DNA from: Vitrella brassicaformis CCMP3155
Lineage: Eukaryota; Protista; Chromerida
DNA length: 64,000 bases
Direction of reading: 5' to 3'
NCBI GenBank assembly: GCA_001179505.1
Contig: CDMY01000223.1
Location: 1 to 64,000 of the forward strand
Positions 38,501 to 43,440 of the stretch are shown one piece after another; position 1 is the first letter of the stretch; the number at the start of each line of letters is the position of its first letter. A model generated the notes under the pieces. It was not told the DNA's origin, did no database searches, and worked only from the letters and a program-made list of their open reading frames with translations. The translations under genes and the position numbers were made by a program.

Positions 38501-39336
38501 GCCGTCGCTATGTGTGGAACCGCCAGCTGTGGCAGATGGACACGAGCGGAGATGATGCTCGCTTCGATGTCGACATGTGGGATGACGAAGAGCAGATCGA
38601 GCAGCAGTGGTATGAGGAGCGGCAGGCCATCGCCGAGAGCAAAGCCAAGGAGAGGCAGCAGCTGAGGGAGAGGGGGGTGGAGGTAGAGATAGAGAGCGGT
38701 GAGGGTGACGAGTGTGACGACATGGAGGGCTACACGTAGGAGGACATCAACGATCATCTGTGGGGCAAGCCACTGCCATACAACAAGGTCTTCGGCAAAC
38801 CCATCACACCCACGCGCCACCAGGCCCTCCCCAAATTCTTCACTGTTACGGGGTAGGGCGAGAAGAAAAAAGACGCCGTCTGTCTAGCTCTCGGTGTGTC
38901 ATGCATGTGTGTGTGTGTGTAGTGTATTGTCTGTGCAGCATACTTCGCAGCGACCCCATGCACTGGTGCCCACGACACGTCCACATCGAGCCAACAGGAG
39001 ACAAGACGCCCATCATTGTCTGCTTGCTGCCCCTCTTCTCCACTGCAGGACGCTGCCGAAGGATGACTCGCGGGCCAACGCCACACAGACCAAAATCACC
39101 ACATTCTTCCCGCCACCGTAGGGGCCAACCACACACCCAGACAGGCAGCTCACAGAGATCCATCCATCCATGCCTGTCTGTCTGTCTGTCTGTCTGGGTG
39201 CCTCGCCTCGTTCAGCCGTGTGAAGCCGCTTCTGGTGCAGTTATCGCTGACGGCGTTCTTCCCCCTGACGTCGGCGTGCCGCCAGACCATCAACTACGGA
39301 TACAGAGGCACCAAGAGAAAGAGATCCGATCGATGA
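35542..39336 (+). pseudogene. F-box/kelch/PIP-box paralog 2 with in-frame TAG (pseudogene or truncated allele)
   Basis: MAATPQHLYDVMWYSSAFLDLPELLKLET/VCKQIRALL (F-box); kelch blades as in paralogs 1 and 3; MEGYT-TAG-EDINDHL at 38737-38739 where the paralogs read MEGYTEK; downstream QLSLTAFF (39238-39261) and KRKR intact. Confidence 0.72.
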
Positions 39337-39794
39337 GTGAGGCGAAAACAGAGCTAGAGCTACCATTGACGGGAGAGAGGGAGGATGATTGCTGTGTGAT
39401 GTGATGTGATGTGCATGCCCTCCCTGATGCAGATCAGCGCAGCAGTGCGGGTGGGGTGGTCACCATCGCAGCCAGCCAAGGGCTTGTAAATAGTAGCTAT
39501 CCTTGGGTGTTGACGCCAGTGGGTGTGTGCGTGTGATCTGAACGGTTTTGACACAGTTCAGCGTGTGTGTATTTGTTGTCAATGGGTTGCGTGTCTATTG
39601 GTATGCCACACGGCTCACTGATTGGCCAGGTTGAACCGTGGCTGAAACGTCCTCCGCCTACAAGAGCGCGCTCACTGCCAACAGCTGCAGCAGCCAGCAT
39701 CTGTCGGTCACACGCAAGGCGGGGGGACTCTCCCACTCTCTTGAGTTGCGAGCTCAAATGAGATCGTTGCTCAACAAAAAAGCGCTTGGAAGAG

Positions 39795-41955
39795 ATGCTG
39801 CGGCTTGTGTGCATTGCCATATGGGTGGTGCATGCCTATGCCAAGCCGCACGGCCCGTCGGTCATCCCGCCTGAGAATCCAGGTGAGCCCCGTGACTTCA
39901 AAAAAGCACTCTTGAATGGATGGTGATGCGTGCCGCTGTAGATGACCCTGTTTATCTGCATCCGGGGCACTCGAAGTCTGTGCTGGTCATCGGCGGCGGC
40001 CTTGCCGGCCTCTCGGCAGCACTCGAGCTGGCAGAGAGGGGTGTCCGTGTGGTCCTGAAGGAGGTCGATGAATACGTCGGCGGCCGCGTCAAAGCCAGGC
40101 GCACTATCCCGAGGCATCATGGTGATTCAGATGAGCCGGGCTGGTTCAACGGGACGGTGTCGGTCGAGCATGGCTTCCATGCCTGGTTCAAGAACTATTA
40201 TCAGATGAAGGTGAGCGGAGCGCGAAAGCCAGCCGCGTGTCGTGTTTGAATGGATCCATGCTCACTGCAGGACGTCCGTGACAGGTTAGGAGTGTCCCAT
40301 CTCTACCGGCCGTGGCCGGCTGTCCACTATCGATTCAGACACTACAAGCCTGAAGTCATACACAGCGAGGTGCAAACACCAGAGGGCACGACGACGAGCG
40401 TTGTGAGTGCCTGTCATTGTCTTTGTGTGTTTATTGACGAAGGGCCCGTATCCGCTCAATCTGCTCCGCATCGTTCGCGAGAGCCCCAACCTGTCGGTGC
40501 TCGATGCCGTCAGGTCGCTTGGGAGCATCAAGGAGCTGGCATTCTTTGACTACACTACCGTCTTCAACAGGTGGGGACGGCAGATAAAATTGACGAGCCG
40601 CGCACTTGGTGTATGTGTGGATTTGTATGCTGTGCAGGCTTGATAATGTGACATTCGAGCAGTGGGCCAAGTCGGTGTCCATTTTGAAGAGGTTCTACGA
40701 CATCATCTTCGCCCCGTCCCTCAGTGTGACGCTGAACGAGCGCGGGACGCTGTCGGCGGCAGAGATGCTCACATACCAGCAGCTGTACTTCCTCTCTGAC
40801 CCTCATGCAAGCGACCGAGAGGTCAGCCACAATCACGCACAGACATAACCCGACTGCCCATCATTGCAGCTGCTGTGTCGGTCCTCTCTGTCTGCAGGTG
40901 GCCACAGCCGACTACGGGACTGCTCTACTCAATCCTTGGGTTGACCGCCTGCGGTCCCTCGGCGCCCAGGTCATCACCAATGCGTCCGTCGATGCTCTCG
41001 ATGTCACGCTTGACCAACACAGTGGCGAACTGCGCGCAGCTGGAAGCGTCGATGTGGGTGGCGGCCACTATGATGGCGTGGTGATTGCTGCTGACCTGAA
41101 GGCCGTGCAGAGGATACTCAAGCGGACGGTCGAACACACGCAGAAGGATACGGCAGCGAGCCAAGCAAGTGAGACTGACATGAGTGCGCCGCATCACCAG
41201 CCGACAATCACGGAACCAATGTGTGTGCCTTGTCTCCGTGACTCCATTCATTCATTGTTCACTCAGTCCTCTCCCGTCTGTCAGCCCTGAGCGACCGCGT
41301 GAATGCCCTCCCCATCGCCCCCCCATACAAAGTCATCCGCGTGTGGCTCGACCAACCTCTCAATGCCGACCGGCCCGACATCATGGAGACGCCTGACTGG
41401 TCGCCCGTCAACCTCGTGGCGCAGTACCACATGCTGGAGGATGACGCCAGTGAGTGGGCGAAGCGGACCGGCGGGGCTGTGGTGGAGTTCCACTGCTACA
41501 CCTGGACACGGCCAGACACGAGAGATGAGGAGGTGTGGGGGGTCATCCGACCAACGGTCGTCATGATCCTCCCAGAAGTAGAAGAGCGGTCCATCCGCGT
41601 TGTCGGCTACCACGTCGAGAGCCACCACAACTTCCCCTCTTTCAGCAGGGGCACCAACGCCGCCCGACCAAACTTCGATACGCCCCTCCAGCAGGCAAAC
41701 ATCACCAACCTCGCCTTTGCGGGCGACTGGCTGCGGCCCACATACCCATCTGCTCTGATGGAGAGGGCAGTGTCGACCGGTCGTCAGGCGGCCAACCTGT
41801 TGCTGAAGCGATTTGGTGTGCAGCAGGTGCCTTTGGTCGTGCCACCGACGAACGGGCCGGGGCTGCCGTTTGGTGCTGGTGTTGATGGTGGTAACACGAA
41901 AGGGGAGAGGGGAGGTAGGGGTACTGGTGGTGACGAGGCGTTGATTCATGCTTAG
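39795..41955 (+). CDS. FAD-dependent oxidoreductase, CrtU/isorenieratene-synthase-like, with N-terminal signal peptide
   Basis: MLRLVCIAIWVVHAYA leader; VLVIGGGLAGLSAALELAERGVRVVLKE..YVGGR; EHGFHAWFKNYY; LSAAEML; APPYKVIRVWLDQP; ASEWAKRTGGAVVEFHCY; LAFAGDW..YPSALMERAVSTGRQAANLLL..GV. About 7 exons. Resemblance to actinobacterial CrtU is from recalled motifs. Confidence 0.8.
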
Positions 41956-42295
41956 TGGGGGCTGGAGCTCTCGGCGCTCATTTGTGTGTGAATCGATGTG
42001 TAGTGTGAGATTGCTTATGTGTCTGTGTTGTCTCTTCCTTGTCCTCCTTGTACCTATGTATGGATGTGTGTGTGCGTGCATGGATTGTTTTTCCTGCACC
42101 CACCCACTGGGGGAGGACAGCGGCCCAAGGCCGCCTATGTGTGTGTGCGGCCGCCTATGAGTGTGTGCAGTGTGGATAGCTACAGCCGGACATCAACACA
42201 TGTATGTATGTATGTACGTCATCATTCATGTGTAAAGTAAGGAATATGTCTCGTATATGTTTATGGGCTACAGTATGCCGCGGAAACCAGAAACC

Positions 42296-43440
42296 GGGAT
42301 CAATTGTCAGTCGTTTGAATCGTTTACATTTACATGTAGAACCGTGAACCGGAATCAATTGTCTGTCTCAAATGACTGACATTTGATTTCCTGTCGATTG
42401 GACTAGGGTAAGTCAGGTGAAACGGTGTTGCCTGTGTGCGAACGTCCGGCAATCAAGTGCCGCCAAGAAACCACACCTTCTTCATCAACACACCCCGCAC
42501 CTTCCTCTGCATCTCACGCCGTCACCACTTCCCCTATGGTTGGTTGCTGAGGCATGGCGGGGGCACCAGACCGTACCGAGGAGGAGATCCGGTGCGGCTG
42601 GAAGCATGAGTCCATTTCCCTTGAGGCCGCGCTCAAACAGGGTCTGGAGCACTGGCTCACGGTGAGCCTGAGGAAGCCTGCCATGCGCCACTACAACGCC
42701 ACAGCTGTCAACACGGACAAGACCTACCATGCAAACGCCTACGTCGGCAACACTGGACAGGTCAGTCCGCCATGCAGCAGCCGCACATGGGTATGCCAAA
42801 CAGATCGGGTGCGCGTGACGTGTGTGCAGCACGGAGTGACCATCATGGACGGCAAGGGCTTACGGGCACTCCTCCTCCTCAAGAAGGGCAAGCGGGGCTG
42901 GCGCTGGGACGACTCGAGCGTCGCCCGTCACATCTGGCCCCTCATGCAGCGGACCTACGGGCACGCCAAGCCACGCGACGTAAGCCAAGGATGGAACTGC
43001 GCATGTGTCAGCTCATGTATCAGTTTCTGTGCCAGTATGGATACTGCCCCACGTGCGGCGGCCACACACCTGTGCCCAAGCTCGAACCCAAGAGTGCCCA
43101 GACCGGGCAGGAATGAGACCATCTTCCTGCCTTGGGGCGCTGTCACGTAGACAGCACATAGCCGGCGCCCCCTAGAGATAGAAGGATGATGAGCGTTAGC
43201 AGCTGTGGATGGATCTGCCTAGGCGTCCATTGTGGCTTCTTTGCGTTCCGACTTCTAGCTACAGTCAGCAGCTTTTCGGGCGTAGATGTCATCCCGGGGT
43301 CTCACTTCATGTTGTCGATACTGGATGGTTACCCTAGTCCAATTGACAGCTAATCAAATGTCAGTCATTTGATTTTGAGTTAATGACAGGAGGAAGCGGT
43401 TCTCTAAATGTAAACGATTCAAACGACTGGCATTGATCCC
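42296..43440. mobile_element. Candidate non-autonomous DNA transposon with ~115 bp imperfect terminal inverted repeats
   Basis: 42296-42411 is the reverse complement of 43329-43440, with exact blocks 42308-42332/43405-43429 (25 bp), 42368-42388/43352-43372 (21 bp) and 42397-42411/43329-43343 (15 bp). AT-rich against a GC-rich background. No target-site duplication seen. Confidence 0.72.
42554..43116 (+). CDS. Hypothetical ~150 aa protein inside the inverted-repeat element, with C-terminal CxxCxxH
   Basis: Exon 1 MAGAPDRTEEEIRCGWKH...GNTGQ; intron ~42761-42829; exon 2 HGVTIMDGKG...HAKPRD; intron ~42980-43023; exon 3 FLCQYGYCPTCGGHTPVPKLEPKSAQTGQE*. Both introns are phase 0 GT-AG. Confidence 0.68.

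Follow-up and report, generated by a model that had tools for sequence, protein, structure and literature searches.

Introduction

Does the chromerid alga Vitrella brassicaformis encode a eukaryotic relative of the bacterial enzymes that make aromatic carotenoids, and if so, where would the protein work and on what? The question is raised by a gene at positions 39795-41955 (+ strand) of a 64,000-nucleotide stretch of the strain CCMP3155 genome (assembly GCA_001179505.1, contig CDMY01000223.1, positions 1 to 64,000), which we refer to as the window. A first-pass annotation, made from the letters alone, had read this gene as an intron-containing homologue of CrtU. CrtU and CruE are β-carotene desaturases/methyltransferases that yield φ- or χ-rings. 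Here we find that the gene structure, expression, fold family, tree position and N-terminal signal peptide of the general secretory (Sec) type are established, and place the protein in an exported clade of the CrtU/CruE superfamily that lacks a Rieske domain. The clade is previously undescribed, although its animal copies already carry automatic labels in databases. The Vitrella protein is, in our judgement, probably a flavin adenine dinucleotide (FAD)-dependent desaturase of the secretory pathway that acts on a lipophilic substrate, most probably a carotenoid end ring.

Results

The CrtU-like gene is spliced and transcribed

The open reading frame listing, its translations and transcript contigs together resolve the gene into seven exons, from an ATG at 39795 to a TAG stop at 41953-41955; within exon 1 the protein cannot begin further upstream, because a TGA stands in frame at 39759. 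The transcript contigs came from four public runs belonging to three studies and were compared with positions 39300-42300 of the window. Their sampled-word shares (0.56-0.72) are consistent with spliced RNA, and at the gene they differ from the window by zero letters. Six introns of the coding sequence (GT..AG, 59-98 nt) are removed in contigs from all four runs, which bears out the multiple spliceosomal introns proposed by the first-pass annotation. The spliced coding sequence, 1728 nt long and free of internal stops, encodes 575 amino acids. The gene is single-copy in the 72.7-Mb, 1064-contig genome, and its surroundings, a contig of at least 64 kb, are eukaryotic and intron-bearing. The V. 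brassicaformis CrtU-like gene is a genuine, transcribed nuclear gene.

Exon 1 (39795-39882) encodes the signal peptide and the beginning of the conserved mature N-terminus (…SVIPPENP). It is followed by a phase 1 intron of 59 nt (GT..AG, 39883-39941; transcript joint 39880>39940, cut +2) and by exon 2 (39942-40210), which holds the FAD-binding Rossmann motif GxGxxG (VLVIGGGLAGLSAALELAERG) and the EHGFHAWFKNYY motif. Transcript contigs then define intron 2 (60 nt, 40211-40270), exon 3 (40271-40369), intron 3 (73 nt, 40370-40442) and exon 4 (40443-40570), where the alignment also reveals a GPYPLNLL…SPNLS motif common to the exported clade. Beyond intron 4 (67 nt, 40571-40637) lies exon 5 (40638-40821), in which transcripts and alignment place a SAAEML…YFLS motif, and beyond intron 5 (76 nt, 40822-40897) exon 6 (40898-41168), the region in which Chlorobiales and cyanobacterial relatives have a Rieske insertion; domain scans found no Rieske domain here. 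Intron 6 (98 nt, 41169-41266; transcript joint 41168>41267) precedes exon 7 (41267-41955, including the stop), which contains APPYKVIRVWLDQP, GGAVVEFHCY, GDW…PSALMERAVSTGRQAAN, the clade-specific VQQVPL…GPGL and a 29-residue Gly-rich C-terminal tail peculiar to the Vitrella protein. The start of this last exon at 41267 is 18 bases before the AG at 41283-84 favoured by the sequence-only reading, and adds six residues. The motifs on which that reading was built (MLRLVCIAIWVVHAYA, GGGLAG, GFHAWFKNYY, APPYKVIRVWLDQP, WAKRTGGAVVEFHCY and ALMERAVSTGRQAANLLL) were all located in + strand frames, where they had been reported.

Relatives of the protein occur in animals, fungi, protists and bacteria

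General family models say little about the protein. In the Vitrella exons Pfam recognized only the generic families NAD_binding_8 (exon 2, E = 5e-11) and Amino_oxidase (PF01593; exon 7, E = 1.5e-7). A scan of NCBIfam found no model for a CrtU-like family, the best match being a weak one to HpnE; a search of PDB sequences with exon 7 gave zero matches; and a protein-atlas feature search returned nothing beyond generic amine-oxidase clusters. Homologues were looked for with single exons as queries, and the joined 575-residue model was used for alignment and tree building. When the last exon was run exhaustively with HMMER against 1.84 billion representatives, 385 proteins matched at E ≤ 0.001. 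The best match had E = 5.7e-60, with a top identity of 52%, so that the similarity of exon 7 to its relatives is far above chance.

The relatives were named by cluster look-ups and a profile search. A close set, scoring 600-800 bits against the profile, consists of eukaryotic proteins and metagenomic bacterial proteins. The eukaryotes are echinoderms (Asterias, Holothuria, Amphiura and Antedon), hemichordates (Saccoglossus, Ptychodera and Glandiceps), the chiton Liolophura, the rotifer Brachionus, the fungi Saitoella and Quaeritorhiza, and Acrasis kona. Many of their proteins bear an automatic name, 'carotenoid phi-ring synthase-like' in RefSeq for echinoderms, hemichordates and the chiton, and 'carotenoid phi-ring synthase' in A. 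kona, while those of Brachionus, Saitoella and Quaeritorhiza are unnamed; all are 40-53% identical to the Vitrella protein. The animal copies lie on scaffolds of tens of megabases, and are thus host genes. The brittle star Amphiura (P0170/P0173) and the feather star Antedon (P0175/P0178) have two diverged paralogs each; the family has therefore been retained and duplicated within echinoderms.

A more distant set, whose identities in exon 7 are about 30-37%, includes the isorenieratene synthase of Actinopolyspora, Chlorobiales proteins of 640 amino acids and cyanobacterial ones of about 650. Species-representative bacterial genomes, when scanned, gave among the matches listed only relatives of 28-34% identity (Chlorobiaceae, many cyanobacteria and one metagenome-assembled genome of Bacteroidetes), which bears out the presence of the cyanobacterial and Chlorobiales type in these groups. 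Neither the Vitrella protein itself nor a Chromera orthologue was among the matches in the protein collections, which may lack records of this genome. The closest full-length homologue, P0181, is 53% identical to the Vitrella protein and comes from a protist transcript contig of 65% GC (JGI sample 3300017497); no dinoflagellate spliced leader was found on that contig.

The eukaryotic proteins form one clade nested among exported bacterial proteins

We built a quick tree of 92 rows and a careful maximum-likelihood tree of 60 rows (LG+C20 PMSF), which were concordant. The outgroup was made up of HpnE- and ZDS-annotated sequences, and CrtU and CruE were represented by annotated close relatives of the characterised enzymes; phytoene desaturase (PDS) was compared by structure and family scan only. 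Both trees separate the CrtU/CruE superfamily, with Vitrella inside it, from the outgroup by a 100/100 split, and the motif table of the alignment agrees, as the CrtU-type motifs are common to the superfamily and missing from the outgroup. The first-pass annotation had named such a tree as the check on its assignment of the protein to the CrtU type, and the assignment stands.

Within the superfamily, the careful tree supports the exported clade at 100/100 and gives it a long stem (0.99). Every eukaryotic sequence falls into a single group (100/100), which is embedded among the exported clade's bacterial members. Vitrella falls into a 13-row group with animals (97/91), adjoining P0181. Cyanobacterial and Chlorobiales proteins together make up its sister group (99/99); actinobacterial and myxobacterial CrtU branch further out, as does a group in which some proteins are fused to a lycopene-cyclase domain. 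The nearest bacterial kin of the Vitrella protein are consequently not actinobacterial CrtU, whose motifs the first-pass annotation had compared, but bacterial proteins exported by twin-arginine translocation (Tat), followed by the Rieske-containing Chlorobiales/cyanobacterial type. A single clade of Vitrella and the cyanobacterial sequences was rejected by the approximately unbiased (AU) test (p = 1.7e-8, at a cost of 172.8 log-likelihood units).

The position of the eukaryotic copies among bacterial ones fits an old bacterial origin, as judged from the sequences. The annotation's proposal of an old horizontal acquisition is thus supported as regards bacterial origin. The acquisition is not specific to chromerids, given the copies in echinoderms, hemichordates, a chiton, rotifers, fungi and Acrasis. 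Animal monophyly excluding Vitrella was not rejected (AU p = 0.22), and we therefore leave the donor unnamed.

The alignment defines the exported clade by a leader directly before I-x-P-x-N-P-x-D-P..L, then GxGxxG, by the C-terminal V-(R/Q)-Q-x-x-(L/M)…G-P-G, and by a length of about 520-575 amino acids with no inserted domain; the Vitrella protein has all of these. The other eukaryotic proteins share its leader, I-x-P-x-N-P-x-D-P, GxGxxG and C-terminal GPG, and belong to the same clade with 100/100 support, although some have long signal-anchor leaders and none has a Gly-rich tail like that of Vitrella. Counts of N-glycosylation sequons and cysteines did not separate eukaryotic from bacterial members of the clade.

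Two further observations concern individual sequences in the trees. In the bacterial member P0006 (L004, 10001-11599) both ends align, and about 140 residues past the Rossmann motif are scrambled, in what looks like a frameshift pair in the metagenomic contig. P0040, P0085 and P0208 (738-747 amino acids; Deltaproteobacteria-type sequences) are natural fusions of a lycopene-cyclase domain with a CrtU-like desaturase, and cluster, with good support, with unfused proteins of 500 amino acids.

An export signal without a transit peptide

Codons 1-16 (39795-39842) encode a leader with a basic n-region (MLR), a nine-residue hydrophobic core (LVCIAIWVV; Kyte-Doolittle 9-residue maximum 3.2) and the c-region HAYA, with A at -3 and -1; cleavage is predicted after AYA. 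The leader is a canonical signal peptide standing directly before the conserved mature N-terminus, in agreement with the annotation, which had noted a cleavable-looking leader and no plastid transit peptide. Its relatives in the exported clade carry export signals as well. Members of the eukaryotic clade (30 rows) begin with a hydrophobic Sec signal peptide or signal anchor, followed by the conserved I-x-P-x-N-P-x-D-P..L; several animal leaders are long enough for signal anchors, whereas that of Vitrella is short and cleavable-looking. Most bacterial members of the exported clade have an RRxFL Tat motif and/or a lipobox cysteine, and five of them were confirmed as bacterial by the context of their contigs.

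Import into the plastid would call for a bipartite signal, that is, a signal peptide followed by a non-conserved, basic, hydroxylated transit stretch. The Vitrella protein has the former and lacks the latter: the 25 residues past its signal peptide correspond in the alignment to the mature N-terminus of the animal and fungal homologues, and contain three acidic residues (E, D and D) with a net negative charge. Since this stretch is conserved, acidic mature sequence, no transit peptide lies behind the signal peptide. The phytoene desaturase of the same genome served as a control. It has about 170 residues before GxGxxG, compared with 46 in the CrtU-like protein, and its long bipartite plastid presequence has no counterpart in the latter. 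The absence of Phe at +1 is uninformative, because Vitrella plastid proteins frequently lack it (PMC6668581). Judged by its targeting signals, the CrtU-like gene therefore appears not to belong to the pigment pathway of the plastid.

Exon 1 of the Vitrella phytoene desaturase gene (L088, G000:C179:54671-57970, minus strand, 2271 to ~1500) codes for a signal peptide followed first by an acidic and then by a Ser/Thr/Arg-rich stretch, and could serve as a candidate reference bipartite presequence for this genome. We also noted, unexpectedly, that the Chlorobiales and cyanobacterial relatives P0037, P0053, P0055, P0050, P0049 and P0200 start with twin-arginine RRxFL motifs; judging from these leaders, ring aromatisation in Chlorobiales and cyanobacteria may occur on that side of the membrane which faces the periplasm or the lumen.

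The protein lacks a Rieske domain and its closest homologue is predicted to fold like phytoene desaturase

A Rieske domain (PF00355) is inserted in the middle of the fold in the Chlorobiales/cyanobacterial-type proteins P0037, P0053 and P0049, as found by scanning, and in P0200, according to precomputed domains. In contrast, domain scans detected none in any Vitrella exon, nor in P0181 and P0169 of the exported clade.

The structure of P0181 was predicted with a 62-row alignment, with high confidence (pLDDT 94.6, pTM 0.94). The top match of the model in PDB was rice phytoene desaturase 5MOG (E = 1e-29, TM 0.75/0.84 over about 500 columns), followed at about 1e-21, eight orders behind, by amino-acid, protoporphyrinogen and monoamine oxidases. 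Plant-type PDS thus represents the closest solved fold and, according to the PDB title and family name, uses FAD to desaturate a lipophilic precursor of carotenoids; however, its identity is 20%, and ZDS-annotated relatives of PDS, together with HpnE, fall in the outgroup of our trees.

Among enzymes linked to aromatic rings, the Chlorobiales CrtU/cyanobacterial CruE type resembles the Vitrella protein in its amine-oxidase fold, in the motifs EHGFH..F..YY, WA..GGSV.E.H.Y and GDW…LME.AV.(T/S)G, and in having an N-terminal export-type signal. It differs by its Rieske [2Fe-2S] domain, at residues ~320-404 of 620-655, which Vitrella lacks, by a Tat-like instead of a Sec signal, and by the absence of the exported clade's N-terminal I-x-P-x-N-P-x-D-P and C-terminal GPG; identity is about 30%. 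Actinobacterial CrtU, a type known from Streptomyces, Brevibacterium and Mycobacterium and represented here by the annotated isorenieratene synthase of Actinopolyspora, belongs to the same superfamily and, like the Vitrella protein, has no Rieske domain. Its motifs GFHAFFRQYYNL, APPFLVSRLWLDRP, GGSVLELHGY and ALMERAATTG parallel those of Vitrella, so that the motif parallels listed in the first-pass annotation are present in this enzyme. Yet it has no signal peptide, stands on the far side of the superfamily tree, and is about 26-37% identical.

Transcript ends and a bacterial gene row

One contig, from run X7, is unbroken from upstream of 39300 to 42257, and with it the full 5' leader would be about 521 nt (approx. 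39178-39794). The leader contains an intron of 96 nt (GT..AG, 39337-39432, + strand), which is absent from contigs of all four runs, although one short X1 contig retains it; its second part occupies 39433-39794. There are four upstream ATGs, the last of which, at 39758, lies in a different reading frame and overlaps the start codon of the CrtU-like gene. The contigs of the other runs break between ~39600 and 39800, and the long X7 leader may therefore be a neighbouring transcript fused by the assembler. The 3' untranslated region (41956-42257, + strand) is about 300 nt long, with one contig extending to 42298.

At one bacterial locus (L002, 7841-12938), genes for an MMPL transporter, the exported-clade oxidoreductase and a cytochrome P450 lie on the same strand, with a divergent TetR regulator upstream. 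Such a row might form a small unit for modifying and exporting lipids.

Discussion

The above results place the Vitrella protein in the exported, Rieske-less clade of the CrtU/CruE superfamily, and on the whole we favour its being an FAD-dependent desaturase that works in the secretory pathway on a lipophilic substrate. A carotenoid end ring would be the most probable substrate because of phylogenetic bracketing: four neighbouring clades are linked to carotenoids, either through the annotation or taxon of the hosts of CrtU/CruE (Actinopolyspora isorenieratene synthase, Chlorobiales and cyanobacteria) or through fusion to a lycopene-cyclase domain. Taken by itself, the assignment of some kind of carotenoid ring as the substrate is tentative, and we would place it a little below an even chance.

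According to this proposal, the protein would enter the endoplasmic reticulum (ER), shed its 16-residue leader, and work in the endomembrane lumen or outside the cell, and not in the plastid stroma. It would dock on the lumenal or outer face of a membrane, as its relatives may do, and take a long lipophilic substrate into a tunnel beside the flavin, like that of phytoene desaturase, where hydrogens would be removed, most probably from a carotenoid end ring. The reduced flavin would then hand its electrons to O2 or a quinone, through which it must re-oxidise, as there is no built-in Rieske centre. The product could be a fully aromatic ring, as made by CrtU/CruE, a ring desaturated only in part, or a lipid other than a carotenoid.

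Several points weigh against this proposal. The long stem of the clade (0.99) and the missing Rieske domain allow for a changed substrate or chemistry. The fold is that of a model of the homologue P0181, from which that of the Vitrella protein is predicted, and the cleavage of the signal peptide and the location of the protein rest on sequence rules and alignment. Vitrella carotenoids are found within a four-membrane plastid, whereas the CrtU-like protein has only an ER signal. The gene neighbourhoods of five bacterial members contained no carotenoid genes and had no common context. Literature searches found no study of the exported clade and nothing relevant on a eukaryotic CrtU-like enzyme. 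Finally, among animals, aryl carotenoids have been reported from sponges only, and not from the groups that carry the gene (PMC3093257).

A rival reading is that the substrate of the exported clade has changed. The protein, whether secreted or lumenal, would then be a flavin oxidase acting on something other than a carotenoid (another isoprenoid lipid, a sterol, quinone or polyene, or even an amine), and H2O2 or an altered lipid would arise at the cell surface. The stem length, the loss of the electron-transfer domain and the secretory location apart from the plastid would all suit such an enzyme, as would its occurrence in hosts unable to make carotenoids, the bacterial neighbourhoods devoid of carotenoid genes and the single TetR-MMPL-enzyme-P450 arrangement. 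However, the exported clade is nested among carotenoid-linked clades instead of being basal to them, the motifs of the substrate domain are conserved with CrtU, and phytoene desaturase is a far better structural match than any amine oxidase. Moreover, the animal hosts are rich in dietary carotenoids and known to modify them (PMC3093257). We regard a non-carotenoid oxidase as rather unlikely.

Alternatively, the protein may be a working aromatic-carotenoid synthase, converting β-rings of β-carotene or a xanthophyll to φ- or χ-rings, in which case aryl carotenoids would have been overlooked in Vitrella and in the animals carrying the gene. The retention of every CrtU-type motif and a fold like that of phytoene desaturase argue for this, and the sister Chlorobiales/cyanobacterial type stems from groups known for aromatic rings (PMC7395447). 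The Tat-like signals of that sister clade also mean that export alone is no argument against carotenoid chemistry. The sister-clade members examined, however, have the Rieske domain that Vitrella lacks, and a long stem separates the two. The confinement of animal aryl carotenoids to sponges (PMC3093257), the five bacterial neighbourhoods and the lack of a transit peptide for access to plastid carotenoids all speak against it, and a paper on the compartments of Chromera and Vitrella gives a limited pigment set in which no aryl carotenoid is named (PMC6668581). A true aromatic synthase is unlikely, slightly more so than the non-carotenoid oxidase.

An origin from the cyanobacterial ancestor of the plastid, with CruE passed on by endosymbiotic gene transfer and its product working in the plastid, would be suggested by the CruE-like proteins of the sister clade and by the photosynthetic life of Vitrella. 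We consider it very improbable: the AU test rejects the corresponding tree, the nearest kin are animals, fungi and Acrasis, the Rieske domain is absent, and so is the transit peptide, unlike in the phytoene desaturase of the same genome. Bacterial or animal contamination, or a dead gene, which finds support only in the patchy distribution and in the many animals among its neighbours in the tree, is refuted by six spliceosomal introns removed in transcripts of several studies with zero letter differences, by the intact reading frame, by the eukaryotic, intron-bearing contig of at least 64 kb and by a best relative only 53% identical, and we give it practically no credence.

The desaturase proposed here touches on how aromatic carotenoids are read in the geological record. 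Aromatic carotenoids and their fossil derivatives serve as markers for sulfidic, sunlit water. Cyanobacteria make aromatic carotenoids too, and fossil records have already been re-read accordingly (PMC7395447). The eukaryotic branch described above, with an alga, echinoderms, hemichordates, a chiton and rotifers, provides a concrete gene for testing whether aromatic carotenoids can have a eukaryotic source; alternatively, the gene may mark a still-hidden step in the remodelling of dietary carotenoids by animals. The consistency of the export signals, Tat in bacteria and Sec in eukaryotes, also raises the question of whether ring aromatisation takes place on the outer face of the membrane. It is an unlikely but far-reaching possibility that eukaryotes, among them a chromerid alga and members of several animal phyla, possess a carotenoid ring desaturase of the lumen or cell exterior that derives from the aromatic-carotenoid synthases, and which would turn dietary or endogenous β-ring carotenoids into aryl or otherwise ring-desaturated ones. 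If this were true, aryl-isoprenoid biomarkers and the aryl carotenoids of animals need not always be bacterial.

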